Origin: Macrostomum lignano
Lineage: Eukaryota
Length of the DNA: 64,000 nt
NCBI GenBank assembly: GCA_002269645.1
Contig: NIVC01000217.1
Span: 62,001 to 126,000 of the forward strand
Direction of reading: 5' to 3'
Positions 3,059 to 62,830 of the stretch are shown in pieces (position 1 is the stretch's first letter; each line of letters begins with the position of its first letter). The notes below the pieces were generated by a model. It had not been told where the DNA came from, did not search any database, and worked only from the letters and a program-made list of their open reading frames with translations. The translations under genes and the position numbers were made by a program.

Positions 3059-4373
3059 CAAGGGATACTCTAAAAGTTTTGCAATTCAACTATTTAAAGT
3101 TAATTCTGCCAAACTTTTCTATTACAATCCTTCAAAGTAGGCTCCCCGGAACTGCAAACACTTGTGCACTCATCCGAGCCACTTGTTCATGAAGCCCTGG
3201 AAGGCTTCAATTGGGATGCCATCAATCGCCTCCTTTGCCGCCCGCTCCAGCTCCTTGTTGGACTGAAACCTGCACCCCCTAAGCGACTTTTTGATTTCTG
3301 GAAAGAGCCAGAAGTCACAGGGGGCAAGGTCTGGTGAGTAGGGTGGGTGTGGTAGCGTTGAAATGCCCTCTTGGTCCAGGAATGCTCGAGTTGCAGCAGC
3401 CGTGTAGGCGGGGGCATTGTCATGGTGAAGTTTCCACCCTCGCATTCCCGTCCTTGGCTCCCTCTAGGCCACGCTGTTGATCACGACAGGCAAGCACTCT
3501 TCAGTATACTATCGAGCAGTGACTGTAGCTTGACCCTCCAGCTTCACCATCGCCACCACGCCTTGTGAGTCGAAGAAGATGGCAAACATCCGCTTGCCCT
3601 GGGACCGAGACCGCCTTGCTTTCAGGGGTCATTGCCCACCTTCCGGTACCCACTCTGCACTGCTACACTTTGTCTCAACGTCAAAATGATACAGAAACAT
3701 CTCATCACCAGTGATGACTTTAGAGTGGCACTGATGGCTCCCGTGCTCATATCAATCGATGAGAAACTGACAGAACTCCATGCGGGCCTGTTTCTGAGCA
3801 TCTGTCAGGATTTGGGGTATCCATTGGGCACAAAGCTTCCTGACTCTCAGGTGATCGTGTAGAATCGTATCGACCGCTGCCAATCCAATGCCAACATTCA
3901 TAGCTAACATGTCCGTGGTGATTCGCAGATCCTGATGAATCAGCTCCTGCACTGCAGCGATGTTTTCCTCCGTCACTGCTGTCGGAGGTCTCCTGGGCCA
4001 GGGGTCGTCAGAAAAGCTGGTCCTGCTGGCCTGGAACTTGCGGTACCAGTGTGTAACTGTAGCATATGACGGCGCTTGAGCCTCCAATGTTGCTAGTAGC
4101 TCGGCATGAGTCTCAAGCACCGTGAGCTTTTGCTTGTGGCAGTACCAAATTAGTAGCCGATTTTGCTCACGAATCAATTCCATGGCTGCAGCTGTACAAG
4201 CTACAGTTAAGGAGTCTCTGATTTTGACTGGGGGCTGAGCAGGCATATATGTATGAATTCACTTGAAAATTGAGGTGGAGACTATGTACATGTTTATTGT
4301 ACAGAGAGTTGGTTTTGAAGATTGTGCAACTTGCACAAGTGGTTGAATTGCAAAACTTTTGGAGTATCCCTCG
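3059..4373 (-). mobile_element. mariner (DD34D) DNA transposon, full length (~1.3 kb), inactive
   Basis: TIRs of about 32 bp (caagggatactctaaaagttttgcaattcaac / gttgaattgcaaaacttttggagtatccctcg, 2 mismatches). TA TSD at 3057-3058 and 4374-4375. Confidence 0.93.
3170..4246 (-). pseudogene. mariner transposase pseudogene
   Basis: One reading frame contains WIPQILT (WVPHEL-like), ITGDE, HHDNAPAY and HPPYSPDLAPCD, with D-34-D spacing. It is broken by four in-frame stops (TGA, TGA, TAG, TAG). Confidence 0.92.
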
Positions 4374-6466
4374 TACTTAGGAATGTGTCATGTCTATGCA
4401 GGAATATATTTTAGCATATTTTTAATATGCATTATACCAAAGTTAAAGTTACAAATTGTGTGCTAGGGCCTATATTTGTTTTTTGACATATGCATAGCTA
4501 GAGCACCAATGCTTAGTAACTTTAGAAAATCCAAAAAAAATTGGATTAAATTAAAAATAAAAATAACAAATCAATGTTTGTAGCTTTTTTGGGCTTTTTA
4601 AGTAAAAAAATTGTTTTATTTTAGCTTATATTAAAATTTATCAAAAAAAATCAACTTAAACTTTATGATAATATGCTATTTTATATTTTAATAATTTGTT
4701 TAATTAACTAAGAAACTATTATCTAATAGACACATCAAATTATGCCCTGGAAAATGATCTAAAAGCATATTTCATGTAGACATATAGATTATACATTTTG
4801 GATGACCCATTATAAAGCTAAATATTGCTACTCAGCTTTAGCTAGGCACTACTATGCACTTTTAATTTTTTGATAAACATTTTTATTGTGTATAGTATGT
4901 GCCACTTCATGAACATTTTGTTTATGTATACTAGAATTTCCACCACACTTTCTTGAGTGGGACTGCTTGGACACTTGTCATTACTAAAATGCAATGCTTA
5001 TTACTATGGTCTTATGCCAATAATGACAATATTATCCACATAGCACCATGCCAATAATGCTCTGCTTATTAGTATAGCAACTAAATTATATATGTAGGAA
5101 TGGCCTGCTACTCTTAGCATATACCATTCTAATAACAACAATATTATCTATTTAGTGCTATACCAATAATGCTATGCTAATTTACATAGTAGCTTAATTA
5201 TTCACAGATAATAAAAGAACTAGATGGGGCTTTTCCATTACAGGAAAACACTAAGTTACAGGTCATCATATTGCAGGAGCATTTTCCCAAAAAATTGTGT
5301 GCTTCAGAAATAACGAAAAACCAAAAATTTGTAAAATAGCTAATTTGATTGCAAGCTTATTCAAAATGTGGTACAAATCCTCAAAATTGCTTATGGAATG
5401 CCACAAATCGATACAATGTCCAACCATGATTAATTTAGTTTGAAAATATGTAGTTGCGCTTTGTCATATATATACACTATTTATACTGTCCTGCTCCTAT
5501 AAGTTATGTTTAAGTTTAAGTAGCGATTTTTAACTGTGAACAAAACTACAACAGCTTAGAGGTGTATTTTTATTTTAACTTTTAAAAGATAGCATGTATA
5601 CAAAGTCCAAAATAATAAATAGTGATAAAGAAGTGATAAAAGTTAATTAAAAGTCTTTTTATTTTCAACAACCAACTCGGAAAAAAAATTTGAAGGGTTC
5701 AAACCGTTGAAAATTAGAACAGCTAGACTATTGGCAAACTTTGAAATGGAGAAAAATGGAGAAGTTCAAAATAGATTCAAAGAAAAATTTAACTTGCTGC
5801 AACTGCGTAAATACTAACTAATGCAATTTTAATGGCTGAGCTATAAAATGAAGAACTTACTATAAATACTACCCCTTGCGATTTGAATGCTGTAAAATGA
5901 AGGACTTCACCTATCAATCTGATGAATATGTAATATTTATATACGATAAAATGCTGACAGAAAAGAGATATTTGGCAAAAATGAACCAAACTAAAGCTTT
6001 AACCAGCTTTAAAATTTAGAACACAAGTCAATTTGGCTTCAAAGTGGTGTAGCAGCTAAGATAAAGAGAAAACATAGAACAGTTTCAATTGACCAGCATA
6101 TAAAAGTACTTTGCTGAAAAATGCAGAAATTCTGCAACAGACAGGGGTCGTAGAACGAATCGCACAATGTTAAACAATTGGTGGTAAATAAGTAGCTTAA
6201 GAAAAAGCAAACAGTTTCAAGGTATCGTATTCAAAGCCATTAAAGCATAGTAGCATGCCAAACAAAGTGCTAATAAAATGACCATAGAAAATCAGCACAA
6301 TAGTCTTAAAGCACACTGAATGCCCTAAATGTCATCCCAGCAATTTGAATATCTGAGCTGTAAAATGAAGGATTTGCTATAAATGCCAATACCAACCCTG
6401 CTATTTAGAATGCCTGCTGTAAAATGAAGAACAGAACCAACAATATCAAGGGCAATTTGTAGGCTT

Positions 6467-9400
6467 TCACTTTGACTGCCGACTGCCGCCGGCTGTTTCG
6501 GCCTGGCGTTTCTTCGCTGCAGCCGACTGTCGACTCTTCGCTGGATTCGCTTGATCGGCGGCTGTTTCAGCGGGACGTTCCTTCGCTGCAGCCGCCTGTC
6601 GACTCTTCGCTGGGTTTGCTTTCGCTTGATCGACGGCTGTTTCAGCCTTGCGTTTCTTTGCTGCAGCCGCCTGTCGAGTCTTCGCTGGGTTCGCTTTCGC
6701 TTGATCGACGGCTGTTTCAGCCTTGCGTTTCTTTGCTGCAGCCGCCTGTCGACTCTTCGCTGGGTTCGCTTTCGCTTGATCGATGGCTGTTTCAGCCTTG
6801 CGTTTCTTTGCTGCAGCCGCCTGTCGACTCTTCGCTGGATTCACCGTGTTTGACTTGTGAGATGCTGCCGCTGGACCTCGGACAAAAGCAAGGAATGCCT
6901 CCGGTCCAACGATGTCCGGTTGCTGCATGTTGGCCAGACCAGAAATGATGCCACCAATCGCAAATCGTGCAGCCATGCTCATTGACTTCATTGTAGCTTG
7001 GTACGACTGGCGTGCAACATTGGGTTTGTGGCACAGTCGGATCGATACTGCCTTTTGTTGATTTTCGTCTAGGTACATTGCGGAGTACGTTTCAATGAAT
7101 TTCCGATAGGCTGTATTAGTCACATGCTCGATTTTCGAATTCTTTGCTCGCTCCCTTGTCCATACCCTCGCAAAGCCACCCGTGCCAAGTGGGAAGAGCC
7201 TGTCAGTTGGTGAGGCCGTCTTTGCTCTCTCTTGAATGTAATTCGCGAGAATTTCGGCAACGCTGTCGACCGCAACTCTACAGGCGCCATACATGTTGGA
7301 CGTCTTGTGCTCTTTAACGAAAAATTCGCTCTTCTGATCAGTCAGCCACTCAAGGCCTTCCTCAATGGTTGCATTAGTCGGAATGTCCGGCCTACTGGCG
7401 TTGCCATTCGAGAAGCACATTGAAGTGGTGATGCCAACAATGACGTCGTTGGACAAAATGTTTGATTCTGCAGCTGATTCTGCTCTAGTAATTAAGGAAT
7501 GCACATGCGAGTGCAAACTTTCGACTTCTTCTGGCTTCAGTAATTCCTTATCGAGAACGTTCCGCAATCTGGCATCATTTGGCCGACGAACCTTAAGTCC
7601 ATACGCCTTGGTTAGGCGCTTTAGACGCTCTTCGAACTCCAGAAGGTAGCATTTCAGGCCTAGATTCCGTAGTTCGACAAAACGGCGTGCTCGGAAAAAC
7701 GAAACTAAATGCGTTAACGCGTTGATGCATGATCGATCGGCTGATTTATTTCGCTTCGAGTCCTCCTCAACGAACGCGCTAACTTTATCACGAAACTCTT
7801 CAGTCAAAATCGAAAGAAGGTCCGTCAGCCCACAAGCTTTAGCTAATCGAGACAGAGCATCAGTGTTCTTCCGAATCGACGACGCCTTAAGTCCGCCTCC
7901 TTCCCACTTTGGTAGCCACTTGGCCAAGTCTGAGAGCTCGACCTCCAGCAAAGTCGCCTCCTTTTTGGCATCAATGGACTTTTTAAGCGCATCAAATTTT
8001 TCCTGGGCTTTCTTGGCAGCAGCTTCTGCAGGCTTGTAGTAATGAAACCGCACACGATGGGCAGTCATTGAGCGCTTCTCAAACAGAACATCACAATCTG
8101 GGCACTTCACCTTTCTGGAAGAGTCATCTTCAACCTCTTGCTGATTAAATACTTTGATCTCTGCAACCAGATCGTCTATATTCTTCGAGCCAAGAATATC
8201 TTTGTGGCTTTCGCGTAGATGTTGACGGATCCGGGAATGGAAAATTCCATGTTGTTGTCCCTCGGATTCCGATGGCTTCTTGAACGGGCAAATATAATTC
8301 ACACCTCGCTGCTTCGATGAATTTTCCTTACCGGAAAAGGCTGCATTAGAAGAACCAGCATCAGCGGCATCGGCATCAAGATCAACAGCGGCATCGGCAT
8401 CAAGATCGACAACGGCAACATGACAACCAGCGGCGAGAATGGCATTTAAGTCTTCCTCGGAAATAGGGACCAGATGGTAATTGCCGTCCTGAAGAGTTCC
8501 ATTTAGATGTTCAGGCACAACGAACTCTTGCTGCTGCTGCTGCTCAGGTGGCAACGATGGTAGAGTTGGCGGGTTGCCAGAAACTGGGTCACTTGTCCTG
8601 CTGTCCGAGCCAACACTGGCAGGAGTTGCATTGTCCTTGGACATTTTCTTATGGCCTGCATCGAGGTTAGGATGAAGGTAAGATAAAATGTAATGAACAT
8701 GATAGTCAGTGACTGCTAGCTATGAAAATATTTTCTTAAATAATAAATTTACATTACAGGGTATGCTTATGAAGCAATAGGATAATATATAGGTAAAGTA
8801 ACCTTCCATCAGCCATTTCTGCAATTTAACAGCCAACTGTGATTTGAAGTATCAGATCTGCAATTTAATGTCCCCTCCCTGCTGTGATTTGAGTCCTACT
8901 TAATCAGTCAACCTGCAAATATACTTTGAATTACAAAAAATGTATTTACCTAGAGAAGCAGTCAATTGCTGCTGTGGCTGCTGCTGCTCAGGTGGCAACG
9001 ATGGTAGAGTTGGCGGGTTGCCAGAAACTGGGTCACTTGTCTTGCTGTCCGAGCCAACACTGGCAGGAGTTGCATTGTCCTTGGACATTTTCTTATGGCC
9101 TGCATCGAGGTTAGGATGAAGGTAAGATAAAATGTAATGAACATGATAGTCAGTGACTGCTAGCTATGAAAATATTTTCTTAAATAATAAATTTACATTA
9201 CAGGGTATGCTTATGAAGCAATAGGATAATATATAGGTAAAGTAACCTTCCATCAGCCATTTCTGCAATTTAACAGCCAACTGTGATTTGAAGTATCAGA
9301 TCTGCAATTTAATGTCCCCTCCCTGCTGTGATTTGAGTCCTACTTAATCAGTCAACCTGCAAATATACTTTGAATTACAAAAAATGTATTTACCTAGAGA

Positions 9401-11185
9401 AGCAGTCAATTGCTGCTGTGGCTGCTGCTGCTCAGGTGGCAACGATGGTAGAGTTGGCGGGTTGCCAGAAACTGGGTCACTTGTCCTGCTGTCCGAGCCA
9501 ACACTGGCAGGAGTTGCATTGTCCTTGGACATTTTCTTATGGCCTGCATCGAGGTTAGGATGAAGGTAAGATAAAATGTAATGAACATGATAGTCAGTGA
9601 CTGCTAGCTATGAAAATATTTTCTTAAATAATAAATTTACATTACAGGGTATGCTTATGAAGCAATAGGATAATATATAGGTAAAGTAACCTTCCATCAG
9701 CCATTTCTGCAATTTAACAGCCAACTGTGATTTGAAGTATCAGATCTGCAATTTAATGTCCCCTCCCTGCTGTGATTTGAGTCCTACTTAATCAGTCAAC
9801 CTGCAAATATACTTTGAATTACAAAAAATGTATTTACCTAGAGAAGCAGTCAATTGCTGCTGTGGCTGCTGCTGCTCAGGTGGCAACGATGGTAGAGTTG
9901 GCGGGTTGCCAGAAACTGGGTCACTTGTCCTGCTGTCCGAGCCAACACTGGCAGGAGTTGCATTGTCCTTGGACATTTTCTTATGGCCTGCATCGAGGTT
10001 AGGATGAAGGTAAGATAAAATGTAATGAACATGATAGTCAGTGACTGCTAGCTATGAAAATATTTTCTTAAATAATAAATTTACATTACAGGGTATGCTT
10101 ATGAAGCAATAGGATAATATATAGGTAAAGTAACCTTCCATCAGCCATTTCTGCAATTTAACAGCCAACTGTGATTTGAAGTATCAGATCTGCAATTTAA
10201 TGTCCCCTCCCTGCTGTGATTTGAGTCCTACTTAATCAGTCAACCTGCAAATATACTTTGAATTACAAAAAATGTATTTACCCGGAGAAGCAGTCAATTG
10301 CTGCTGTGGCTGCTGCTGCTCAGGTGGCAACGATGGTAGAGTTGGCGGGTTGCCAGAAACTGGGTCACTTGTCCTGCTGTCCGAGCCAACACTGGCAGGA
10401 GTTGCATTGTCCTTGGACATTTTCTTATGGCCTGCATCGAGGTTAGGATGAAGGTAAGATAAAATGTAATGAACATGATAGTCAGTGACTGCTAGCTATG
10501 AAAATATTTTCTTAAATAATAAATTTACATTACAGGGTATGCTTATGAAGCAATAGGATAATATATAGGTAAAGTAACCTTCCATCAGCCATTTCTGCAA
10601 TTTAACAGCCAACTGTGATTTGAAGTATCAGATCTGCAATTTAATGTCCCCTCCCTGCTGTGATTTGAGTCCTACTTAATCAGTCAACCTGCAAATATAC
10701 TTTGAATTACAAAAAATGTATTTACCCGGAGAAGCAGTCAATTGCTGCTGTGGCTGCTGCTGCTCAGGTGGCAACGATGGTAGAGTTGGCGGGTTGCCAG
10801 AAACTGGGTCACTTGTCCTGCTGTCCGAGCCAACACTGGCAGGAGTTGCATTGTCCTTGGACATTTTCTTATGGCCTGCATCGAGGTTAGGATGAAGGTA
10901 AGATAAAATGTAATGAACATGATAGTCAGTGACTGCTAGCTATGAAAATATTTTCTTAAATAATAAATTTACATTACAGGGTATGCTTATGAAGCAATAG
11001 GATAATATATAGGTAAAGTAACCTTCCATCAGCCATTTCTGCAATTTAACAGCCAACTGTGATTTGAAGTATCAGATCTGCAATTTAATGTCCCCTCCCT
11101 GCTGTGATTTGAGTCCTACTTAATCAGTCAACCTGCAAATATACTTTGAATTACAAAAAATGTATTTACCTGGAGAAGCAGTCGA

Positions 11186-11221
<36 letters not shown>

Positions 11222-11757
11222 AGATGGCAGCAATGTTGGGGTCAGTCGTCTAGAAGTAGGTGCCAAGATAGTAGAAGTAGTAGACAAGACCTTTCTAAAA
11301 TGTTGAAGTTATATAGGACATTTAAAATCTATTGACTTGCATTGCATAGCCATAGATATAGTGGTGCTTATCTATCTTAGTCACCTTATACAAGTTGCAT
11401 TTAGTAGAGATCAGTTTATGCATCATAAAGTCCAAAATGGCATTATACATTAGGTGCAATGATGCCATGTGACATAATTTGCAGTGAAAATCTCAAGCCT
11501 TAACTCATGCCTATGCCCAATTGAATGCTAAATTTCAGAATAATAAAATAGAAAGAGAATACTTACTTGCCAACACAACCAATCCATGACTTGCCATTTT
11601 CGTCATTGTACATGACAAATGCACCTTTCTTGATTTTCCTACTTTCATTTTCTGACCCTGGAATGATTTGCAAATCCTCTTTAAACACATAATGGCATTC
11701 ACCTTCAGTTTGGTCCTGCCAGTAAACTAAAACTCGTGTTTTATGGCGATGAGCCAT
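6467..11757 (-). CDS. multi-exon tyrosine-recombinase-like protein (~1084 aa): Tudor/SH3-like N-terminus, polyQ, 5x 50-aa repeat exons, 2 C2H2-like fingers, YR catalytic domain, basic C-terminal repeats
   Basis: Predicted exons: 11757-11567, 11294-11170, 10875-10726, 10431-10282, 9987-9838, 9543-9394, 9099-8950, 8655-6467. All are GT-AG and phase-compatible, totalling 3255 bp. The last exon has CPDC..H..FH fingers and the YR motifs NASRP (R), HKT (K), TNTAYRK (R), LCH (H) and RQSY (Y). Confidence 0.75.
6470..6850 (-). repeat. 75-bp coding tandem repeat (25 aa: ANPAKSRQAAAAKKRKAETAVDQAK) x~5
   Basis: Directly visible in the DNA and in the ORF translation. The last copies are degenerate. Confidence 0.9.
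8531..11200. repeat. 444-bp tandem array, ~6 near-identical units (150-bp exon + 294-bp intron)
   Basis: The MSKDNATP start recurs at 8644, 9088, 9532, 9976, 10420 and 10864, a period of 444. Units differ at only a few positions (ctagag/ccggag/ctggag). Confidence 0.97.
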
Positions 11758-12485
11758 TGTTTTATCCTATTAGGATCGAATTGCTTCACAATTAGGTACT
11801 AGCCTGTAGGCCTAGTGTTCATGTTCTAGATAAAATCTGCAAGTGAAAACTTGTCTACCAAATGGCAGCAAATAAGAATAAACGAAAGAAATTTTAATTT
11901 AAAAAATTTTAGGTCAGTCTTTTCTAGCTAATCTGATAGTTCTCATTAGAACAAATGTTGGATAAAGATTTTTAATTTAACTGATTGGTCTTCATCCAGA
12001 GAAAATGAACTTTTTCTTTAATATATAATATTCTTTTTTTCCAAAAGCTTATTCGGTCACACTGTTTGTATTTGTCGCTACCACTATTTAATTTTCTTAA
12101 TATCTAATTATCTACTTATTGTAGATAAGATTAATATATAATTGTAATTGATGTCATCGCTTTGCTTTATCTGGTTCTAACTGATTTGAAAAAAAAATTA
12201 AACGGTAATGAATTTATAAGGTTGTGGTTAAGATTAAAGAAAAGATTAAATGAGCAACCTGTCAGAACCATTTTAGTGCCTAAATATTAAGGCTTAATGC
12301 AGTTCGAAATCGAAATGAAACTTTTTTCTTTTTATGAAGAACTAGTACACACAGTTACGCACATAGGGTCAGTGGGCAGTGGGGCATACATTCTTGTAAT
12401 TTATATTAGTCTAGTCGAATATGCAGCTATATCTAAATTCACTGAATCCACTATAAATTCTAGTTGTCACTCTGTGGTATTAACT

Positions 12486-12741
12486 AAATTTGTATTGTGA
12501 TAGCTTATTTAATTCTATAGTTTTAGACTAAAATAATAAAACTATATTAAACTTTGAATATTACTTGAATATTAAATTTCAAGAACTATATTTAAAACTA
12601 ATATTAAACTTAAATTTTATATTACTTTGAATATTAAACTTTGAAACTATATTAAACTTTATACTTTGAATAATTTGGAAAGAATGTCTATAGTTTTAGA
12701 CTAAAACTATAGAATTAAATAAGCTATCACAATACAAATTT
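12486..12741. repeat. foldback/MITE-like structure with 41-bp inverted repeats
   Basis: aaatttgtattgtgatagcttatttaattctatagttttag (12486-12526) is the reverse complement of 12701-12741. The interior has aaactatattaaacttt direct subrepeats. Confidence 0.75.
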
Positions 12742-13918
12742 TGTTTGGATTTTATTGTTTTGATTAAGCAAACATGGAAGAAACCATTCTGCCAATTTGG
12801 TATATATATAACTGCAATTACTACTGCATATATTGCATTTCATTTTGTAAATTAAACTGATATAAAATCAAGTACAAGTTTCAGTTACCGGAATTTACCC
12901 AATTCCGGTAAATTAATGCCTTTCTGTACTTTGATGCCTGTAATCTGGTGCTCATCTTTAATTTGAAGACAGAAGCTAAAAATTCCTATATCTTTTGAAT
13001 AAAATGCAACTATGATCTTAAATTACAGTAGGTGATAGATCTATAGCAGTAGGCACGATCAAAGGGGTTTTCAAAAATCTGTAATTTGAAGCCTTTCTGT
13101 GATCTAATGTGCACCTGTAATTTTATGCTAAACTCCTGTAACCCTGCGCCAATCTGTAACGATTTGGAAAGTATGGGCCATTCAGGCATATATACTTAGT
13201 AAAACAGCTTTCTACTTTCAGTTCAAAGTTTAGAAGCCCAAGCTTGCAAGCATAAACAACTTGCTAATTGGTTAAGCAATAATGTACATTAGCCAGTCCA
13301 CTGAATGTACATGGCAGCTTTAGACTGGAATTCCGAGAAAGGCAATAAAAATTGGGGTAGGGCAGGTCAGGGGTTGAGTGGAAAAGGGCAGTTGGAGGTT
13401 TAAATGGGGGGTAAGAGCCAATAAATGAGCTTTGGCTTTAAAAAAAATCATTAAAATGCTTCCGCTTAACTTACTACTGAATTGAAAGTAGCTTACACGC
13501 AAATGTGCTGAGTGGCCCATCTGGTTATTCTAGTACCTGTGATTATATAGGAAGAGACCTACTATTTTTAGCATGTACCATGCCTAACTATTAAACACAT
13601 TTAAGTGTATATTATACTAATTATAATTTAGTTGCCATGCAAATAAGCAGAACATTAATGGCATGATGCTATGTGGATATTGTTATTATTATTAGCAGAA
13701 GACTATGGGAATAATTGTGCTGACTTAATAGAAAGATTTCTTGGTAATTAAGTAATGAAACAAATTTCTTTGCACGATTTGGCAACACTAGTGAAATATA
13801 TGGAAGCTCTATAATAGTAGTTATAAGCTTAGTAAGCTCAATAGCAAGAACCACCTTATTTTACCATTATATTAAAATATTTAAAACAAGTTTCATCATT
13901 TTATCATTCCTATACCAG

Positions 13919-14669
13919 TTGAAGTGCCGCGCAGCTTCTACCTGTTGGAAGAACTGGACGAAGGTCAGAAAGGCACTCAAGATGGCACAATAAGCTGGGG
14001 CCTTGAGAATGACAATGACCAGACTCTTACTAATTGGATTGGCATGATTCTGGGCCCACCAAAGACGCCATATGACAATCGAATGTACAATTTGCACATC
14101 ACTTGCGGTCCCAACTACCCTGAACAGGTGAGAGGCGCCTGTTTCTTTATTGGTGTACTTTATGGATTATAGCTCGGGCTGGTTTAAGTTTAGAAACTTA
14201 TGTTAATCGTTCCGGAATTTTTTAAGTTAGTTTTGAAGTAATTCAGGGTTCGAATATCAGTACTCAGATAATTCAGAATTCGAATATCAGTACTCAGGTC
14301 ATTCAGAATTCGAATATCAGTACTCAGGTCATTCAGAATTCGAATATCAGTACTCAGGTCATTCAGAGTTCGAATATCAGTATTTAGGTAGTTCAGAGTT
14401 CGAGAGAAAAGTGCGCCAAAATTCACATAGCCATATACCGTTCCCATCCAACCACCCCTGACCAGCCTCCAACCGTGCGCTTCATCAGTCGCATCAAGAT
14501 GAACGGTGTACACGAGACTACAGGGCTGGTGGACGGCAGGAAGCTGCCCAGTCTGGCTCAATGGCGCAGGGGCTACCACATCAAGACTGTGCTGCAAGAG
14601 CTGAGACGCCAGATGACCGCTAGAGAGAATGCCAAGCTGTCCCAGCCGCCCGAAGGCTCTTCGTTCTAA
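13919..14669 (+). CDS. UBE2V: ubiquitin-conjugating enzyme E2 variant (UEV1/Mms2); first coding exon not located
   Basis: Exons 13919-14127 and 14466-14669 (GT-AG) give [60 protein letters not shown]|PPTVRF...[10 protein letters not shown], the hallmark UEV sequence. Confidence 0.93.
14230..14405. repeat. 30-bp intronic minisatellite
   Basis: ttcagaattcgaatatcagtactcaggtca x~5.5 inside the UBE2V intron. Confidence 0.9.
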
Positions 14670-15290: not shown

Positions 15291-16224
15291 CGCATTACCT
15301 AATGGTCGCATCAAATGAACTCACTTTTTTATTAGCGTCAGTCCAATATCTCCCCGTTGCTATGCTGTTTGTTAAACGTTATCCTAGAGATGTATAATAA
15401 CACAAGTATGCCCGTGAACTTGTTGCTGGGGATAATTCCGTGTGAATGAAAAATTTATAAATAGAAAATGAAGTGTGTTGATAACCCATGTTTGAGGAAG
15501 ATAGATGCGCTTGATATCAATGTAGTATCGGCTGAACTAATTAATTCTGTTTAATTGGCGCGCAAGACAAAATTATTAATGCTAAATAATTCACAAATTC
15601 ACAAATCAATTTTTGTTGTTCTCTTATTATAACTAGTTCCACTTAAGTAGTACCTTATATTATTGCTATCGTTAAATTAATATTTTTTATTTTTTATCCC
15701 AAGTTTTTCTTTTGTCTCCCCTCCCCTCTGCTACAGTCGTAACCAGTTAATAGCAAAGATTAGTAAATAATAATTCAGTATATGTTTGTTCGTAAAATGT
15801 AATATATACTTTGTAGAAATGTACTTTAATATTTTATAGTATAAGTATGCAAATTTCCATTGTAATGGTTTTTTTTTCAATTTTTTTCTATTGTAGGCAC
15901 CTTTCTTATTTGTACTTTATAAACTAATTAAGTTATTAAGTTATTAAATATATTAAACAATTGTGTTCGATGCTATGGCCGTTTCTAGATGACTGATCTA
16001 ATGAAGCTTGCTTAAAATATTAAATGTGCGGGCTATTTAATACGAGTAAGAGTGACAGAAAGATTCAAACAGCAAATAAACCAACACGATGCTAAATATA
16101 GGGAGTCTATAAACTCTTATTGTGTGTTCATTGTTATATTTTTGCTTGCTTTCTCACAAAGCTCAATAAAAATCCTGTTTGTGCTTTTTCAATCTACTTT
16201 ATTTGTTTTTTAGCTGCTCAATCC

Positions 16225-16800
16225 CCAACTGCCCCACCCTCCTCGACTACCCCACTCCCCACTACCCCACTCCCCACTGCTCCACTCTCCCCCTCTACCC
16301 CACTCCCCCACTACCCCACTCCCCACTGCTCCACTCCCCCACTGCCCCACTCTCCCCCACTACCCCACTCTCCCCAATCCCCCACTGCCCCACTCTCCCC
16401 CACTACTCCACTACCCCACTCCCCCACTACCCCACTCCCCCACTACCCCACTCCCCCACTGCTCCACTCCCCACTGCCCCACTCTCCCCTCTACCCCACT
16501 CTCCCCCAATCCCCCACTGCCCCACCCTCCTCCACTACCCCACTCCCCCACTCCCCCACTGCCCCACTCTCCCCCACTGCCCCACTGCCCCATTCTCCCC
16601 ACTACCCCACTCCTACTGCCCCACCCTCCCCCATTGCCCCACTCCCACTGCCCCACTCTCCCCCACTGACCCACTCTCCCCTACTGACCCACTCCACCAC
16701 TCTCCCACACTCCCCCACTGACCCGCTCTCCCCCACTCTCCCCCACTCTTCCCCACTGCCCTACTACCCCACTCCCCCCCCTGCCGCACTTCAATTGATC
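16225..16800. repeat. C-rich low-complexity repeat (ccccact variants)
   Basis: Degenerate CCCCACT/CCCCACTA/CCCCACTG units. The opposite strand is G-tract rich. Confidence 0.9.
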
Positions 16801-22109: not shown

Positions 22110-23435
22110 GTGTTCCAATGTGTCTAACAGCTGGCTGTTCCATCAGTGTGTCTAACAGCTGGCTGTTCCATCAGTGTGTCTAACAGCTGACTGTTCCACC
22201 AGTGTGTCTATATAACAGTTGGCTGTTCCATCAGTGTGTCTAACAGCCGGCTGTTCCATCAGTGTGTCTAACAGCTGGCTGTTCCATCAGTGTGTCTAAC
22301 AGCTGGCTGTTCTATCAGAGTGTCTACAGTTGGCTGTTCCATCAGTGTGTCTAACAGCTGGCTGTTCCATCAGTGTGTCTAACAGCTGGCTGTTCCAACA
22401 GTGTGTCTAACAGCTGGCTGTTCCATCAGTATTTCTAACAGCTGACTGTTCTATCAGTGTGTCTAACAGCCGGCTGTTCTATCAGTGTGTCTAACAGCTG
22501 ACTGTTCCATCAGTGTGTCTAACAGCTGGCTGTTCCATCAGAGAGTCTAACAGCTGGCTGTTCCATCAGAGTGTCTAACAGCTGGCTGTTTCATCAGTGT
22601 GTCTAACAGCTGGCTGTTCCATCAGTGTGTCTAACAGCTGGCTGTTCCATCAGAGTGTCTAACAGCTGGCTGTTCCATCAGTGTGTCTAACAGCTGGCTG
22701 TTCCATCAGAGTGTCTAACAGCTGGCTGTTCCATCAGTGTGTCTAACAGCTGACTGTTCCATCAGTGTGTCTAACAGCTCACTGTTCCATCAGTGTGTCT
22801 AACAGCTCACTGTTCCATCAGTGTGTCTAACAGCTCACTGTTCCATCAGTGTGTCTAACAGCTGGCTGTTCCATCGATCGGTGTGTCTAACAGCTGGCTG
22901 TTCCATCGATCGGTGTGTCTAACAGCTGGCTGTTCCATCAGAGTGTCTAACAGCTGGCTGTTCCATCAGTGTGTCTAACAGCTGGCTGTTCCATCAGAGT
23001 GTCTAACAGCTGGCTGTTCCATCAGAGTGTCTAACAGCTGGCTGTTTCATCAGTGTGTCTAACAGCTGGCTGTTCCATCAGTGTGTCTAACAGCTGGCTG
23101 TTCCATCAGAGTGTCTAACAGCTGGCTGTTCCATCAGTGTGTCTAACAGCTGGCTGTTCCATCAGAGTGTCTAACAGCTGGCTGTTCCATCAGAGTATCT
23201 AACAGCTGGCTGTTCCATCAGAGTGTCTAACAGCTGGCTGTTCCATCAGTGTGTCTAACAGCTGGCTGTTCCATCAGTGTGTCTAACAGCTGACTGTTCA
23301 TCAGTGTGTCTAACAGCTGGCTGTTCTATCAGTGTGTCTAACAGCTGGCTGTTCCATCAGAGTGTCTAACAGCTGGCTGTTCCATCAGTGTGTCTAACAG
23401 CTGGCTGTTCCATCAGTGGCTGTTCCATCAGTGTG
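22110..23435. repeat. 28-bp minisatellite, ~47 copies
   Basis: catcagtgtgtctaacagctggctgttc, highly homogeneous. Confidence 0.97.
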
Positions 23436-48195: not shown

Positions 48196-51100
48196 ATGGC
48201 CAGCAGTTCAAGTCTGCTGGATGACTCCAGGGCTCAAAGCGGCTCTCACAGACGTTACGTAGCTCTGGCATCCCAGACTCAGTCAGATGCTGCTGCAAAT
48301 GCCTCATCTTCTTCATCAACATTAGCTTCGGATGAAGATGAGGCACCGCTAGTTACTGAGCGGCATCAGCGTAGATGCAGCGGCGGCTCTGCATACGTCT
48401 CAGCCGGGTTGCTCTGCCTTGTGAATTTGTTAAATTATGCCGATCGAAGCACAGTGGCAGCTGTCTTGCACAGAATTAAAAGCAGTTTTAAAGTTGATTT
48501 CAAAGATTCTGGACTGCTGCAGACTTGCTTCATCCTGTCGTATATGATGCTGTGTCCGGTGAGTGTGTTGTGTGTGTGGAAGCTAAAATTGTTGTACGAG
48601 TATTAGTAAATTTTATAAATCACAATGATGAACGAAAGTAGGTTTGTTAAACCTCTAAACTGATTCCAAGAAACCACTAAACTGGAATTTTAATAAATCT
48701 TTTAACAAATTCAAAGAAAGCGTTTCGCGGAATCTCTTCACAGATTTTAAGAAATCCAAACGAATTCTAAAAATTAACCTATTAACTGATTCTAAGAAAC
48801 CTCCGGGAGGATTTGAAGAAACATTTCAACAAGTTCTAAGAAACCTCTGGGAGGATTCCAAGAAACATTTCAACAAGTTCTAAGAAACCTCTGGGAGGAT
48901 TCCAAGAAGCATTTCAACAAGTTCTAAGAAGCCTCCTGGAGGATTCCAAGAAACATTTCAACAAGTTCTAAGAAGCCTCCTGGAGGATTCCAAGAAACAT
49001 TTCAACAAGTTCTAAGAAACCTCCTAGAGGATTCCAAGAAACATTTCAACAAGTTCTAAGAAACCTCTGGGAGGATTCCAAGAAACATTTCAACAAGTTC
49101 TAAGAAGCCTCCTGGAGGATTCCAAGAAACATTTCAACAAGTTCTAAGAAAGCTAGAGGATTCCAAGAAACATTTCAACAAGTTCTAAGAAACCTCCTAG
49201 AGGATTCCAAGAAACATTTCAACAAGTTCTAAGAAACCTCCTAGAGGATTCCAAAAAACATTTCAACAAGTTCTAAGAAACCTCCTGGAGGATTCCAAAA
49301 AACATTTCAGCAAGTTCTAAGAAACCTCCTAGAGGATTCCAAGAAACATTTCAACAAGTTCTAAGAAACCTCCTAGAGGATTTCAAGAAACATTTCAACA
49401 AGTTCTAAGAAACCTCCTAGAGGATTCCAAGAAACATTTCAACAAGTTCTAAGAAACCTCCTAGAGGATTCCAAGAAACATTTCAACAAGTTCTAAGAAA
49501 CCTCCTAGAGGATTCCAAGAAACATTTCAACAAGTTCTAAGAAACCTCCAGACGGTTTTAGGAAAATCTCTAAACAGATTCCAAGCAATAGCAAACTGGT
49601 TTTAAAAAACTATCAAAGCGAATTCTTAAAAATCTTAATTGATTCTAAAAAAAATACTCACAATGAAAATCTTTGAATGCATTCCTAAACGGGATTAAAT
49701 AGGCATTAAACAGAAAAACTGTCAATCAGTAAAATGCCCTTTAAACTGCAGATATTTGGTTATCTAGGCGACCGCGGTCAACCAGGTCGTTTGCTATTCA
49801 GCCGAAAAGGCATCATGCTGCTGGGAGTCTGTCTCTGGTCTGGCATCACTTTAGCTTCATCATTTGTGCCAAACAGCATGTTCGGCCTGCTGCTGGTCTC
49901 CCGCAGTCTGGTGGGTGTCGGCGAGGCTTCCTATGCCACCGTGTCTGCGCCCATCATTGCCGACCTGTTTGCTCACGATGCCAGGACTTGGGCGTTGATC
50001 CTGTTTAATCTGCAGGTTTGTGCGATCGCTTGTGAAGCTGGTTAGTGATGCAGATTGTCTGGCTACTACACCCCTGATCCTTCAGTGACCCCCTTTCTCT
50101 GATCCCTCAGTGAGACCCTCCACTGATCCTTCAGTGACCCCCTCCACTGATCCTTCAGTGACCCCTGTCCCTGATCCCTCAGTGACCCCTTTCCCTGATC
50201 CTTAGTGACCCCTTTCCCTGATCCCTCACTGACCTCTTTCCCTGATCCCTCAGTGACCCCTTTCCCTGATCCCTTAGTGACCCCTTTCTCTGATCCCTCA
50301 GTGACCCCTTTCTCTGATCCCTCAATGACCCTTTTCCCTGATTCTTCAGTGACCCCCTTTCTCTGATCCCTCAGTGATCCCTTCCCTGATCCCTCAGTGA
50401 TCCCTTTCCCTGATCCCTCAGTGATCCCTTTCCCTGATCCCTCAGTGACCCCTTTCCCTGATCCCTCAGTGACCCCTTTCCCTGATCCCTCAGTGACCCC
50501 TTTCCCTGATCCCTCAGTGACCCCTTTCTCTGATCCCTCAATGACCCAATTCTCTGATCCCTCAGTGACCCCTTTCCCTGATCCCTCAGTGACCCCTTTC
50601 CCTGATCCCTCAGTGACCCCTTTCCCTGATCCCTCAGTGACCCCTTTCCCTGATCTCTCATCGACCCCTTCCCTAATCCTTAAGTGACGCTCGCTAAATC
50701 TTGTATCGCAGCAAATAAAATATTGCCTTTGATTAAATCTGAATATTTAAAAATGAAGTTCATTATGGCGTGCCGAATGCTGCCAACCTGTAATTATAAA
50801 ACACGCGTGTTCAGATTAGCGTCACCAGCTAAACAGGAAGCTCTGTAGCTTTGATGTGAAATTTGCATAGAATATTGTGCCAGTTTAAACTGCAGAAAGT
50901 GCAGAAAGTAGTGCTGGTCATACAGAGATGTGTGCCTTTGCGTATGACTGCGTACGTATCCGCGCGCTTGTGTGTGCCTGCTCAGGGGAGTCGGCAGAAT
51001 GGGCAGTAATGCCTCTTGCCGGTTGTCTCTCATGTCTTTAATAAGATTGGTTGCTCAAAATGGGCCCCTTTAAAAAGCCCCAAAGCCAATTTCTAACATT

Positions 51101-54100
51101 GCAAATCACCCTGCATAATCGGCCTTCAAAAAAGCCCCCAAACAAAACCCCAGGTGCCCTTCGGCACAGGCGTCGGATTCGTGATTGGCCAGCTGGTATC
51201 AGACGCCACTGATAGTTGGAACTCGGCTCTGCGAGTCACTCCACCTCTGGGCCTGCTCTGCGTCAACTTGCTGGCCGTCTGCTTTCGGGAGCCGCGGCGA
51301 GGCCAGTCCGAAGGACCCGCGGCCACGGCGGCGGCCGCTGCGGCGGCTATCAATCCATCCAGATGGTTGGACGATCTGCGAGCCCTGTCAAAGATTAGCA
51401 CTTTTGTGCTTACAACGCTGGGATTGAGTTCGGTGTCCTTTGTGACTGGAGCGCTGGCTCTGTGGACACCTGAGATGCTTAGACTGTCTGTTCTCAGTAG
51501 AGGTGAGAAACTTCATTGAAAATGATTGTCCTTAACATTCCTAATTGCCTCCCCCACCCCAGACAGCAGCCAATAAGAACTAGACACCAACACCCCACCC
51601 CCCACCCCAGACGGCAGCCAATAAGAATCAGACACCAACACCCCTCCCCCACACCAGACAGCAGCCAATAAGAATCAGACACCAACACCCCTCCCCCACC
51701 CCAGACAGCAGCCAATAAGAATCAGACACCAACACCCCTCCCCCACCCCAGACGGCAGCCAATAAGAATCAGACACCAACACCCCTCCCCCACCCCAGAC
51801 AGCAGCCAATAAGAATCAGACACCAACACCCCTCCCCCACCCCAGACGGCAGGCAATAAGAATCAGACACCAACACCCCTCCCCCCACCCCAGACAGCAG
51901 CCAATAAGAATCAGACACCAACACCCCTCCCCCCACCCCAGACGGCAGCCAATAAGAATCAGACACCAACACCCCTCCCCCCACCCCAGACAGCAGCCAA
52001 TAAGAATCAGACACCAACACCCCTCCCCCCACCCCAGACAGCAGCCAATAAGAATCAGACACCAACTCCTCCCCCACCCCAGACAGCAGCCAATAAGAAT
52101 CAGACACTACCCCCACCACAGACAGCACCCAATAAGAATCAGACACTACCCCGCCTGGCTGTCGTAATCCGGTTTTCATCCGGAGCGACGTCCGGAATTT
52201 CATCCGGTACGTAATAAAAATCATTTAAAAACCGGATGAGAGCCGGATGAAAAGTTTACAAACCGGATGAAAACATACATATTTGACCTTTCATCCGGGT
52301 GTTCACCCAACATTAGTCCGGAAATTCATCCGGGAAGCTATCTGGAAAGCCGCGGAGAACAGGGCGGAGCAAATTCCGGAGCGAATCCGGACGAAATGTA
52401 TGCACGCCTCCACCGGATGAGAAACCGGACGAAATTCCGGATGAATGCTGGATCAAATGTATGCACTCCTCCACCGGATGAGAAACCGGACGAAATTCCG
52501 GATGAATGCTGGATCAAATGTATGCACGCCTCCACCGGATGAGAAACCGGACGAAATTCCGGATGAATGCTGGATCAAATGTATGCACGCCTCCACCGGA
52601 TGAGAAACCGGACGAAATTCCGGATGAATGCCGGATCAAATGTATGCACATGTCTACCGGATGAAAAACCGGACGAAGTTCCGGATGAATGCCGGATCAA
52701 ATGTATGCACATGTCTACCGGATGAAAAACCGGACGAAGTTCCGGATGAATGCCGGATCAAATGTATGCACATGTCTACCGGATGAGAAACCGGACGAAA
52801 TTCCGGATGAATGCCAGATCAAATGTATGCACATGTCTACCGGATGGTAAAGCAGATGACATGTTAAAGAACCAAGTAAGGTTGACAACAAGACGAAATC
52901 TTTTGAAAACGTAAGAAAACAAATTGCTGGAAACACCTCAAAGAAAGCAAGGTATATTGCACTTGCACAGAGGGTGGCCAACCTCTAATTCACTGTGCTG
53001 GATAGAGTAGTGGAAGCTGAATATATTGAAACCGAAGATAATTGTTAAAGTTGCGTGTCGCTAAAAATGCAAATACACAAGACATGCTTGAGTCAAAAAT
53101 AGAATGGCAAAACCTCACATTGGGTGGACAAATCAGGAGAAATAGAGAATGAGACGACACACTGTCTTTTGGGCGGCTACAAATTAGTACCAGGCAGAAA
53201 AACTAGAAATTTCACAGAAGAAAAACTTCCAGCTACACGAAGAAACAGGCGCAGAAAAAAACTCACTTATAAAATTGGGGACAACAGAAAAAATAGCGAC
53301 ATATACATTTTTCCATACTGGGAGTGAAACAGAAAGTGTCAACAGAAAACCAGAAACGCAGACCCGAGGGCGATATTACCTATCTGCAGAACAGTGATTA
53401 CTGTACACGTTAGTAACGTTAAGTAACGTTACTGTTCTAAAACACCCACCATGATGTACAGATTGCAGGCGATGGGTACATCGTGCACTTTACATACTGC
53501 AGAATTTTTGAGGATTTTTGTCCTCATGATATGCTACTGTCTAATCGAGCACATGCTCTTAAGACCCCTAGGCGCTACATATTTGATTCGTGACCAATAG
53601 TAAGTTGCAGTCGCAGAAGCAGTAGTGTCATGAGCATATTCGCGCCACGCCGCGGCCACTGGCAATGGCACACGGCTCCCTCTTATATCCTATAGTCTGC
53701 GACAAAACGACTGGCCCACGACTATATAGCCTACTATCCCATCAGGGAAAGTAGCATATCTTCCGCATCGCCGGCCGGACGCTGACTTGTGGGCCCAAAC
53801 TCTGCGAAGACAGTTCTGGCCAGGTCAAAGATCGCGCTAGCGGGGGCATTGTCCGAGTCAGCGGCGACTTCTTCCGCCTCACTCGTCGGTCCGATTATGC
53901 GCACAATCGTACCCACGTCTTCGTGTCTGCCTGTCCCCCGTTTAGCCGAGCTGCCTGGCCCTGATTGGGCAGAGCCGCCTCGCCGTGGCTTGGCAGTCTT
54001 TGTACCAGGCCGACCGTTTAGTGTGCCACGGGTGCGCTTTGGCATCCCCAGTCTTTCCCGTGCAGTTTCACCGCAGCGCGTAAACGCGCGCTGCAGCTCT

Positions 54101-60100: not shown

Positions 60101-62830
60101 GCTCGCAGAGTTGTCCAGTGGCTCACCTGTGCGGGATGAGCGGTGCAAAAAATTTGTACTGTATAACCAGCCACATCATCTCAACGTCACATCGCCTCAT
60201 AAAGACAAGTGTCTCACTTTCAGAAATATCTGCAGGTTTTCCGTCAGTGTTGCAGTTGCCAGAGCTGGTAGCACCTGAGCTGGTAGCACATGAGCTGGTA
60301 GCACATGAGCTGGTAGCACCCGGGCCATTGTGCGCGGCTTCAGCTGATGCCCTTTCCGAAGAACGTGATCGGCTTACGCCAGCAGAACCACGCCCGCGTC
60401 TGGCAGACAGCCTGCGTTGGCGCATGTAGTGTCGCATCCAGTCGCGACGGCGAGTGCTACGATCATCGCCATCCATATCCATGCGCTGTAATGAGGTTTG
60501 CTTCTTCACATTATCAGTAGTACGAAAAAAAATTCTAGACGGATTTTTAGCATGAACCTACGCATGCATTTAAATCTGAAATATATTCAGCATGTCTTTG
60601 TTCCTTCAACTGATAATATAATATACTCCCTTACTTCTTTTTCATGTGTCTTAGATCTGATTGCTGGACTGACAAGAAAGATACGCTACAGACAACTAAA
60701 CATAATCAGTTATGGAATCACAAAGCATGAGCCATAAACTTTGGAAAATTCCATTAAACATAGGCCATAGGCAACATAGACAACAGTGTATTTAAATTGA
60801 AATTAGGATAACATATGGCACGAAATTACTACGGCTTTTGCCACAAAATGTATGGCTTTTATACCGTCTTTGGCGATACAGCTCTATAATTCAATACTTA
60901 CGAGTACTTCACAATTTACGTCACTCACAGTGTGACCAGCAACAAAAATGTGAGAAATAACACAGCTAGAAAGAAAAAACACAGCAGCTACTTAAATGAA
61001 GAAAAAGGGAAAAACATTCACTATAGCAATTTTGCCAATGCTTACTTATTGTCCGAATAGCAATTCTCGTTTTAATTAATTCCAGCTAATTCAAGCAGTA
61101 CATTTTCTTCTTAAATCGACATCATCATCAATCATACGTTGTAGGGATGTATTGAAACGGTATTACCCTATTTGTCTGGGCTAGTGGCCTTCCTTGCTAC
61201 TGCCAGTTGCTTTCCACCCAGGTAGAAAATATAAAAACACAAGAAAAAGCTAAATTGGGCTGTTTATTTAAGTTTAACACAGAAAAGGGATGACTTCTAA
61301 AAAAACACAATAACACAGCTATTTTAAAAAAAGCACAGAAAAACACAAATAACACAGCAGTGGTCACACTGGTCACTCATTACATATTTCTTTACCTAAT
61401 AACAACTCAACGCGGTCTTGCAAATTACATACTCATAAAAAATCCAAGTCCCCTTTCCGAACTCGGTATTTCATCCGGACTTCTTCCGTTTCGTGCATCG
61501 GTCTTTATCCGGCTTTCGGCGGGTCAATGGACGGATGTAAAACTGGACGAAATTCCGGACCAAAATATGCTTTCTTCCGGTTTTCATCCGGTTTTCAATC
61601 CGGCTGATTGTTCGAGTTTAATCGACGAGTCAACCGGATCAAAAACCGGATGAAAAGAGTCACAAAGAGAACTCTTTCATCCGGCTTTACTCCGGATTTC
61701 GGCCCGGTTTTTGGTCCGGAAACAAAAACCGGATCAAAACCGGATCAAAATCTTTTTCGTCCGGAAACACCCCCCTAAAACGGGTTAAACCGGACGAGGC
61801 CGGATGAAAACCGGATTATGACAGCCAGGCGGGACCCCCACCACAGACAGCAGCCAATAAGAATCAGACACTACCCCCACCACAGACAGCAGCCAAAAAG
61901 AATCAGACACTAACCCCACCCCAGACAGCAGCCAATAAGAATCAGACACCAACACCCCTCCCCCACCCCAGACAGCAGCCAATAAGAATCAGACACCAAC
62001 ACCCCTCCCCCCACCCCAGACAGCAGCCAATAAGAATCAGATACCAACTCCTCCCCCACCCCAGACAGCAGCCAATAAGAATCAGACACCAACACCCCTC
62101 CCCCACCTCATACAGCAGCCAATAAGAATCAGACACCAACACCCCTCCCCCCACCCCAGACGGCAGCCAATCAGAAGCGGGCAGCACCACGCTGGTGTTC
62201 GGCGTCTTGACGTGCTTGGCCGGCATCTTCGGTGTGATCGGCGGCACCGAGCTCGCCCGCCGACTTCGCCGAAGAACCGCCAGAGCGGATCCGCTGGTCT
62301 GCGCTGGCGGCCTGATGCTCTCGCTTCCGTTCCTAATGGCCACCCTGCTCACCGTCCGGTCCTACCTGGTCCTTGGCTACGCCTTCATCTTCTTAACTGA
62401 GTTGGCCCTCTTCACCAACTGGGCCCTGGTCACCGATATGTGCATGCGAGTCTGCCTGCCGAGCTTGAGAGCTACGGCAACTGGCTTGAGTCTGCTCAGC
62501 TCCCATCTGCTTGGCGATGCCACCTCGCCCTACCTGTTGGGCCTGTTGACCGACTGGTTTCGTGCCGGTGGGTCTGACAGCTATTATCGGCAGTTCATTG
62601 CTTTGCGACGGGCCATGTACCTGGGGCTGTTCGTGCTCGTCGCCGGGTCTGCAGCGTTTATGGCCTGCGCTATTCGCTATCCGGAAGACTGCCGACGCGT
62701 GGCCAAGATCGAGGAGGCCGCCCTGATTGCCGCTGCTAACAATAGGTGTCTGGATGATGAGGACGATGGGGAGACTGGGAATGAGGGCGAGTCTGAGCGG
62801 CTAGTGGCTGCTGCAGCAACTGTGGCTTAA
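48196..62830 (+). CDS. spns: spinster-family MFS transporter (SPNS1-like), 4 exons
   Basis: Exons 48196-48558, 49752-50015, 51154-51502 and 62175-62830. Motifs: NLLNYADRSTVAAVL, GLLQTCFILSYMMLCP|IFGYLGDR, RSLVGVGEASYATVSAPIIADLF, VPFGTGVGF, LRVTPPLG, ADPLVCA, HLLGDATSPYLLG. Confidence 0.92.
48790..49555. repeat. 44-bp intronic minisatellite
   Basis: aagaaacatttcaacaagttctaagaaacctcctagaggattcc x~17. Confidence 0.96.
50070..50680. repeat. 24-bp intronic minisatellite
   Basis: ctgatccctcagtgacccctttcc x~25. Confidence 0.96.
51545..52149. repeat. ~46-bp intronic minisatellite, left part
   Basis: ccccaccccagacagcagccaataagaatcagacaccaacacccct units. The same array resumes at 61834. Confidence 0.95.
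52390..52850. repeat. 61-bp subterminal tandem repeat of the CACTA-like element
   Basis: ccggatgagaaaccggacgaaattccggatgaatgctggatcaaatgtatgcacgcctcca x~7. Confidence 0.9.
53734..55436 (-). CDS. BEN-domain accessory gene of the transposon (Tudor/SH3-like - coiled coil - BEN), probably disrupted
   Basis: C-terminal IRALFRAIFTDTQLANSSLSG...AELQRAFTRCGETARER is BEN-like. A coiled-coil exon lies at 54726-~54550. The upstream exon (55436-~54862) carries YFLFQYDD...VGCRVCIV..KRYPGRLV. A stop and frame changes occur around 54550-54400. Confidence 0.65.
58045..58568 (+). pseudogene. Gypsy gag, 3'-truncated
   Basis: PPPEPF..WREWAARFTDFIEA..GLKRHF..ARYQFRLCIQQAGEKIEAWHSRLRAAAEPCEF..LIRDQLV..LRRRLLQEADITLEDAL. 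Confidence 0.9.
58553..59220 (-). pseudogene. Gypsy integrase fragment (HHCC + DDE core)
   Basis: AHTGHLG..VWWPKM..CVGCQ, PWQLLGMDF, ITDNGPPF, HPESNGATERVNR. Truncated at both ends. Confidence 0.92.
61440..61833. repeat. CCGGA-rich subterminal region of the CACTA-like element
   Basis: Many ccgga/tccgg motifs in both orientations, mirroring 52150-52850. Confidence 0.85.
61834..62170. repeat. ~46-bp intronic minisatellite, right part
   Basis: Same unit as 51545-52149. The last unit supplies the predicted splice acceptor (aatcag|aagcgg). Confidence 0.93.

Follow-up and report, generated by a model that had tools for sequence, protein, structure and literature searches.

A tandem array of chimeric exons and whole introns, probably founded by exchange between CAG tracts, in an apparently Crypton-like recombinase gene of Macrostomum lignano

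The subject of this work is a minus-strand gene in a 64-kb stretch of the flatworm Macrostomum lignano (contig NIVC01000217.1; we call this whole stretch the window and count positions in it unless another copy is named). The gene carries a row of nearly identical exon-intron units, and our data make it likely that a misaligned exchange between CAG tracts duplicated an exon end, an intron and an exon start in what looks like a Crypton-like recombinase gene, the units having varied since. Tandem Repeats Finder (TRF) places the array at 8533-11208 as a 444-bp repeat with 6.0 copies, 99% matches, 0 indels and a score of 5289, and units cut in register differ from one another at 1-3 positions only. 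Read on the minus strand, the array consists of six identical 294-nt introns and five 150-nt exons of phase 1-1. When exon 1, exon 2, the five unit exons and the last exon are joined, they form an open frame of 3255 nt encoding 1084 amino acids (aa). The original prediction, made from the letters of this stretch, had proposed five new in-frame exons arising from a 444-bp duplication, and both the repeat count and the open frame bear it out.

Structure and proposed origin of the array

The proposed exon chain begins with exon 1 (11567-11757, ATG at 11757), which ends in phase 2 at a GTAAGT donor. Exon 2, the polyglutamine exon (11170-11294), has its CAG tract at 11187-11220 and ends ...QQQSTASP-G at a GTAAAT donor. 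The chimeric exons follow at 10726-10875, 10282-10431, 9838-9987, 9394-9543 and 8950-9099; the first two end in CCGG and the other three in CTAG, and the fifth alone has an Arg>Lys change, at 9042. The last exon (6467-8655) contains a CAG/CAA tract at about 8529-8545. The unit introns lie at 10876-11169, 10432-10725, 9988-10281, 9544-9837, 9100-9393 and 8656-8949, each with the pattern GTAAAT...CTAAC...CAG, and all of these features are on the minus strand. The splice signals are the same throughout, the acceptor being CCTAACCTCGATGCAG/G and the donor G/GTAAAT (the slash marks the splice site), and the 150-nt exon has phase 1 at its entry and at its exit. The description of the unit as an acceptor, a 150-bp phase 1-1 exon and a GTAAAT donor therefore holds in every unit, and the variant counts given with it are also right, on the plus strand (ctagag three times, ccggag twice and ctggag once).

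Each chimeric exon encodes the peptide HKKMSKDNATPASVGSDS(R/K)TSDPVSGNPPTLPSLPPEQQQ-P-QQQLTAS(P/L). The exon is identical in its 5' part to the opening of the last exon (GHKKMSKD...PPEQQQ) and in its 3' part to the close of exon 2 (QQQ-LTAS-P/L-G), and the two join inside the CAG run, as the original prediction had stated. Each unit exon has an in-frame ATG 12 nt from its start. By this identity, the first ~122 nt of the last exon appear as the parent of the 5' part, and exon 2 as the parent of the 3' part. The limits of the array fall within the CAG tracts of exon 2 and of the last exon, and these limits, together with the composition of the chimeric exons, support the proposed misaligned exchange between the two tracts. 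There is a weak similarity of ~20 nt upstream of both tracts. All unit exons, and neither parent tract, have a CCA (Pro) codon within the Gln run (EQQQPQQQL).

Before the exchange, exon 2 would have ended ...(CAG)n CAA TTG ACT GCT TCT CCA G, followed by the 294-nt intron, and the last exon would have started GC CAT AAG AAA ATG ... CCT GAG (CAG)n. A misaligned exchange between these two CAG tracts, 444 bp apart, whether by unequal crossover, replication slippage or template switching, would then have duplicated a segment reaching from the end of exon 2 through the intron into the start of the last exon. The product would be one extra intron and one chimeric exon with the entry phase of the last exon and the exit phase of exon 2 (1-1, 150 nt). 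Because both tracts are read as CAG codons, frame and exon phase would be kept automatically, and a frame preserved by construction is no evidence of selection. The founder unit would already have acquired or inherited the CCA codon within its Gln run, since this codon stands in every unit and in neither parent. Once two 444-bp units were present, ordinary unequal homologous exchange could have changed their number, and the array would have arisen before the separation of the three sampled copies described below.

Every donor and acceptor of the array is an exact copy of a working splice site, which allows the units to be spliced in. Each included unit would add 50 aa of a Ser/Pro/Gln-rich, probably disordered linker between a small N-terminal domain encoded by exon 1 and the zinc-finger and recombinase part of the protein; this linker role, and its neutrality, we infer. 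Since any donor can pair with any later acceptor with the frame intact, a mixture of isoforms holding 0 to n units is to be expected. We count in favor of this origin that the genome is repeat-rich and that the same gene holds two more in-frame arrays, one of 75 bp x 4 at 6546-6842 on the minus strand (C-terminus, basic 25-aa repeat NPAKSRQAAAAKKRKAETAVDQAKA) and one of 24 bp x 2.3 in the last exon at 8362-8417 (DLDADAAV twice).

Two other ideas about the unit were dropped. A small RNA in the multiplied intron was ruled out by the lack of any Rfam match and of any RNA-structure signal (folding z-score +0.32), and the possibility that exon 2 and intron 1 form an older, diverged unit was ruled out for the intron, which has no similarity to the unit intron.

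Unit number and splicing across three copies

We compared three loci of one PacBio-based assembly: L001 (NIVC01000073.1), L002 (NIVC01000217.1), which is the window copy and is 100% identical to window 1-20867, and L003 (NIVC01000033.1). The window copy has six unit-type introns and five chimeric exons; L001 has seven and six, and L003 five and four. Other copies had been expected to hold from 0 to n units, and counts of 4 and 6 chimeric exons against 5 here agree with that expectation. The 15 chimeric exons of the three copies are all 150 nt long and differ only in the last codon (CCAG/CCGG/CTAG) and in the one Arg>Lys change, while the 18 unit introns are identical apart from a 7-bp CCTAGGG insertion in four L001 introns. 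Both the CCGG and the CTAG types occur in all three arrays, in similar 5'-to-3' order, which places the origin of the array before that of the element copies and implies later reshuffling. In DNA outside the array, the copies are ~99.8% identical, with 27 differing alignment columns over ~5.4 kb, a few of them at the very ends belonging to the flanks. On these alignments, several units were already in place in the array at the time the copies separated, unit number and order have changed since then at a higher pace than that of accumulating point mutations, and array-bearing elements appear able to spread. Not all copies are coding, because a C>T change in exon 1 of L003 makes a stop at codon 14 (L003 ~5857, equivalent to window 11718); the sole product annotated at this locus is a C-terminal fragment of 195 aa (PAA93120).

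The array, or its copy number, could be a mis-assembly of long noisy reads, given that all three loci come from a single assembly of a repeat-rich, partly polyploid genome (PMC5730564) and that exact unit counts were taken from the assembly. However, the array is found in three independent contigs with shared structured variants and the 7-bp indel pattern, and the chimeric junction occurs in a transcript-derived model. In addition, the 2.7-kb array fits within the length of a PacBio read, and we give an assembly artefact hardly any credence.

The annotation of this assembly combined RNA-seq (StringTie/TACO) with a de novo transcriptome mapped by BLAT, called open reading frames (ORFs) by TransDecoder and removed transcripts overlapping annotated repeats (PMC5730564). 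Two of its transcript-derived models bear on splicing. In PAA87763 the window chimeric exon 1, starting at 10867, is followed by chimeric exon 2 and the last exon, and in PAA91811 a partial L001 exon 1 is followed by exon 2 and the last exon. The peptide EQQQPQQQLTASPG-HKK, present twice in PAA87763, can arise only from chimeric exons with both of their ends spliced, and by this transcript-based annotation at least some units are spliced in. The 5x50-aa spacer of the original prediction is not shown in the protein: PAA87763, from this locus, has two units, and PAA91811, from another copy, has none.

The units could be real DNA and not real exons, a minisatellite of pseudo-exons within one ~3-kb intron, with exon 2 mostly spliced to the last exon and the protein lacking a repeated spacer. 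PAA91811 would fit this, as in this model exon 2 runs straight into the last exon and all six L001 units are left out, and so would the model from the window locus, which uses two units of five. Yet the doubled EQQQPQQQLTASPG-HKK peptide speaks for true exons, and the units carry the same splice signals as the parental intron. Moreover, PAA87763 and PAA91811 are each one 25-aa (75-nt) C-terminal repeat short of the genome, and this shared loss points to repeat collapse in the transcripts, not to true skipping; the underlying transcripts probably collapse tandem repeats or stem from another copy. On balance we find the pseudo-exon explanation unlikely, though it deserves to be taken seriously.

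Several observations weigh against the origin and the splicing that we favor. A simple CAG-to-CAG exchange leaves the junction CCA codon unexplained, and no copy with zero units, the presumed ancestral state, is seen in DNA among the three copies. The unit counts rest on a single PacBio-based assembly, and L003 has its premature stop in exon 1. In the transcript-derived models, six of six chimeric exons (PAA91811) and three of five (PAA87763) are skipped, which leaves full inclusion unproven and means that most units could be skipped; the transcripts behind both models are themselves probably collapsed or from another copy.

The probable mobile element and its recombinase-fold product

The array-bearing gene lies wholly inside a probable mobile element of ~7.95 kb (5224-13177, minus strand), delimited by the three-locus comparison, and its membership in such a multi-copy element was absent from the original prediction. 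The identity of L001 and L003 to the window is 99.4-99.8% between 5224/5228 and 13176/13177 and stops there, the flanks being unrelated. In all three copies the element starts (C/T)CCATACTTTCC... and ends ...GGAAAAGCC(CC)AT. The three-way comparison of the ends also gives a short terminal direct repeat, CCCAT, at the 5' end (13173-13177) and at the 3' end (5224-5228), of which CCAT is present in all three copies. The only ORF above ~160 aa within 5224-13177 is the gene described here.

The element ends have no long terminal repeats, direct or inverted (long terminal repeats, LTRs; terminal inverted repeats, TIRs). An apparent CTTT(T)CCA...TTACAG symmetry of the ends was rejected as TIRs, as 104 of 1000 shuffles reach it, and because it is no better than shuffles, the idea of a lox-like site at the joined ends is a weak lead. 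Copies of TTACAG(G) cluster at 13084-13159, and inverted ones at 5238-5256. In the 5' non-coding region of the element there is also an inverted repeat (12482-12745; 57 nt, 93% complementary, 150-nt spacer), which may be a small nested hairpin element.

The window element runs antisense to a UBC/UEV-like gene with a 142-aa product (Pfam UQ_con, 7.5e-16), within the 17-kb first intron of that gene, and the L003 element is antisense and intronic within a gene encoding a TRAM/LAG1/CLN8 domain. Could the three copies be segmental duplications of a host gene and not insertions of a mobile element? The known copies number only three, TIRs are lacking and the gene was kept by a GenBank annotation that excluded repeat-overlapping transcripts, all of which would suit a host gene. 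But the same end bases on both sides, the same CCAT repeat and unrelated flanks are seen in three copies of three, two copies lie antisense in introns of unrelated genes (UBC/UEV-like; TRAM/LAG1/CLN8), and the only long ORF has a tyrosine-recombinase fold. We consider segmental duplication very unlikely.

The protein has few relatives. A word-indexed homology search with its core against 5.8 billion proteins matched a single cluster, formed by the M. lignano hypothetical proteins PAA91811, PAA87763 and PAA93120, and an exhaustive HMMER scan of 1.84 billion representatives gave 20 relatives, mostly short metagenome, environmental or Logan contigs. There was no match at E<=1 in Pfam, DUF3504 and Phage_integrase included, for the protein or 14 relatives except zinc-finger and chance matches; PDB sequences and PHROGs gave no recombinase match for the protein or its relatives; and hhalign of the family profile with an approximate Cre sequence gave a probability of 0.17%. 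One of the 20 relatives is a second M. lignano family on other contigs, PAA84835/PAA66829, which comprises distant paralogues (27% identity) with the same zinc-finger and recombinase-like core; it has long repeat arrays of its own, N-terminal (EGTEGVHV) and C-terminal (QQSSDAQQAKKAKKRGPGG).

At the level of the fold the picture is clearer. The AlphaFold2 model of residues LLEVEL...ANMQQ reaches a predicted local distance difference test score of 87.9 from a 19-sequence alignment, against 36.7 from the single sequence. In a PDB fold search with the model, the best eight matches are all tyrosine recombinases (XerA, Tn1549 integrase, integron integrase and Cre; best E-value 4e-3), and in a search of viral predicted structures, the best thirty are all integrases or tyrosine recombinases with probability ~1.0 (best E-value 1.7e-4). 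The alignment of relatives shows the conserved motifs GNAxRxD, HKT..YG, TNTxYRKxxET and RLxHxxxVAxQxY. Model, fold searches and motifs together define a predicted tyrosine-recombinase-fold domain at 6920-7951 on the minus strand. Its candidate catalytic codons, on the same strand, are Arg 7393-7391, Lys 7306-7304, Thr 7114-7112, Arg 7105-7103, His 7030-7028 and Tyr 7003-7001; by the motif alignment, the order R, K, R, H, Y fits the family and Thr would take the usual position of the second His. On the N-terminal side of this domain, two zinc-finger-like motifs (8042-8296, minus strand), CHHC-like and then C2H2-like, are conserved in relatives and match the GTSF1/U11-48K CHHC finger and C2H2 fingers weakly. 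We conclude that the product holds as a tyrosine recombinase at the fold level only: the label recombinase in the original prediction agrees with the AlphaFold2 model and has no sequence-level match behind it.

The element thus described looks Crypton-like. Like Cryptons (Goodwin 2003; Kojima & Jurka 2011, PMC3212892), it has a single gene with introns and a tyrosine-recombinase fold, and it has no reverse transcriptase, DDE transposase, TIRs or LTRs. Cryptons have no TIRs or LTRs and carry short direct repeats of 4-6 bp at both termini (PMC3212892), and the terminal direct repeats here are of 4-5 bp. Unlike Cryptons, the protein has no sequence-level match to Pfam families, including DUF3504 and Phage_integrase, and has Thr at the position of the second catalytic His; in comparison with Cryptons, mobility here is deduced from three copies only. 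We write Crypton-like because our tests of membership by sequence placed the protein in no described Crypton group. Our literature search found no work on Cryptons in Macrostomum.

In the window there are 27 occurrences of the motif AAATYRCAG on the gene strand and 3 on the other strand, and 26 of the 27 fall within the element: 2 belong to its 5' subterminal 100 nt (13087-13123) and 24 to the six unit introns (8826-11110), four in each. The array could have been kept because it is useful, either as an adjustable linker through the choice of in-frame exons or as binding sites in introns for transposition or regulation; this would agree with the concentration of the motif in the unit introns and the 5' subterminal region and with the presence of arrays in all three copies, which shows that array-bearing elements spread. 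However, frame preservation is automatic, and the copies are so young that intact units need no selection. The motif was also chosen post hoc, a small internal duplication accounts for half of its copies in the introns, the inverted similarity of the termini is not significant and a stop codon has already disrupted one of the element copies. We therefore see little to recommend selection for the array. We would rate a shade lower still the more specific proposal that the array is part of the workings of the element, through isoforms whose linkers would span 0 to n x 50 aa or through an AAATYRCAG binding platform in the introns. If it were true, linker length would alter the reach or regulation of the recombinase in the first case, and in the second the sites would bind the element's own protein, with copy number tuning transposition.

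Around the element, exons of the UBC/UEV-like host gene lie at 13919-14127 and 14466-14669 on the plus strand, with the first exon ~3.1 kb before the start of the window, and the second intron of this gene contains a tandem repeat of 30 bp x 5.5 (14238-14403). A broken remnant of a Mariner/Mos1-type transposase is found at 3170-4246 on the minus strand (HTH_48, 3.9e-8; a DDE_3 fragment falls below the Pfam cut-off). Tandem arrays are dense in the window, with 54 TRF rows, for example at 22119-23418 (28 bp x 46), 16222-16778 (8 bp x 67) and 48790-49549 (44 bp x 17), and with 47-bp repeats at 51548-52146 and 61834-62176. This density agrees with the share of 15% that tandem and simple repeats are published to have in the M. 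lignano genome (PMC5730564).

Relation to known routes of exon and intron gain

Tandem exon duplication is reportedly a source of alternative splicing (Kondrashov & Koonin 2001; Letunic et al. 2002). Such duplications usually have intronic breakpoints and produce exons that are used in a mutually exclusive way. The array resembles them in having identical adjacent exons of symmetric phase, whose inclusion or skipping leaves the frame intact, but its breakpoints lie in exons and its exons are chimeric. It likewise resembles the gain of introns through tandem genomic duplication in that intron number rises. Unlike intron gain from duplicated exon sequence, however, an existing intron was copied whole here and the protein was lengthened.

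Closer parallels are the internal duplications of whole introns, documented for Arabidopsis TOUCH3 (Knowles & McLysaght 2006), and the segmental duplications that include whole introns (Gao & Lynch 2009), both as outlined in PMC4974935. As in the TOUCH3 type outlined there, the duplicated segment is a whole intron with exon sequence on both sides, the units are head to tail, the splice signals are inherited unchanged and the result is extra introns and in-frame exons with the reading frame kept. Unlike in those cases, the breakpoints here lie in two CAG microsatellites, there are 4-6 extra copies whose number varies among near-identical copies in one genome, and the gene belongs to a transposon.

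We therefore regard the array as a clean, young and copy-number-variable case of a known route to exon and intron gain, situated in a transposon gene. The general view is left unchanged, since whole-intron internal duplications were already documented. What this case offers is an unusually clean young record of exon and intron multiplication, with the parents present, the breakpoints in microsatellites and the splice signals inherited, and three near-identical copies in one genome that show the array gaining and losing units. It also offers a simple experimental system for how the spliceosome handles rows of identical donors and acceptors. A by-product is a flatworm family of tyrosine-recombinase elements, assigned at the level of the predicted fold, which profile libraries have missed and which has been annotated as an ordinary gene.

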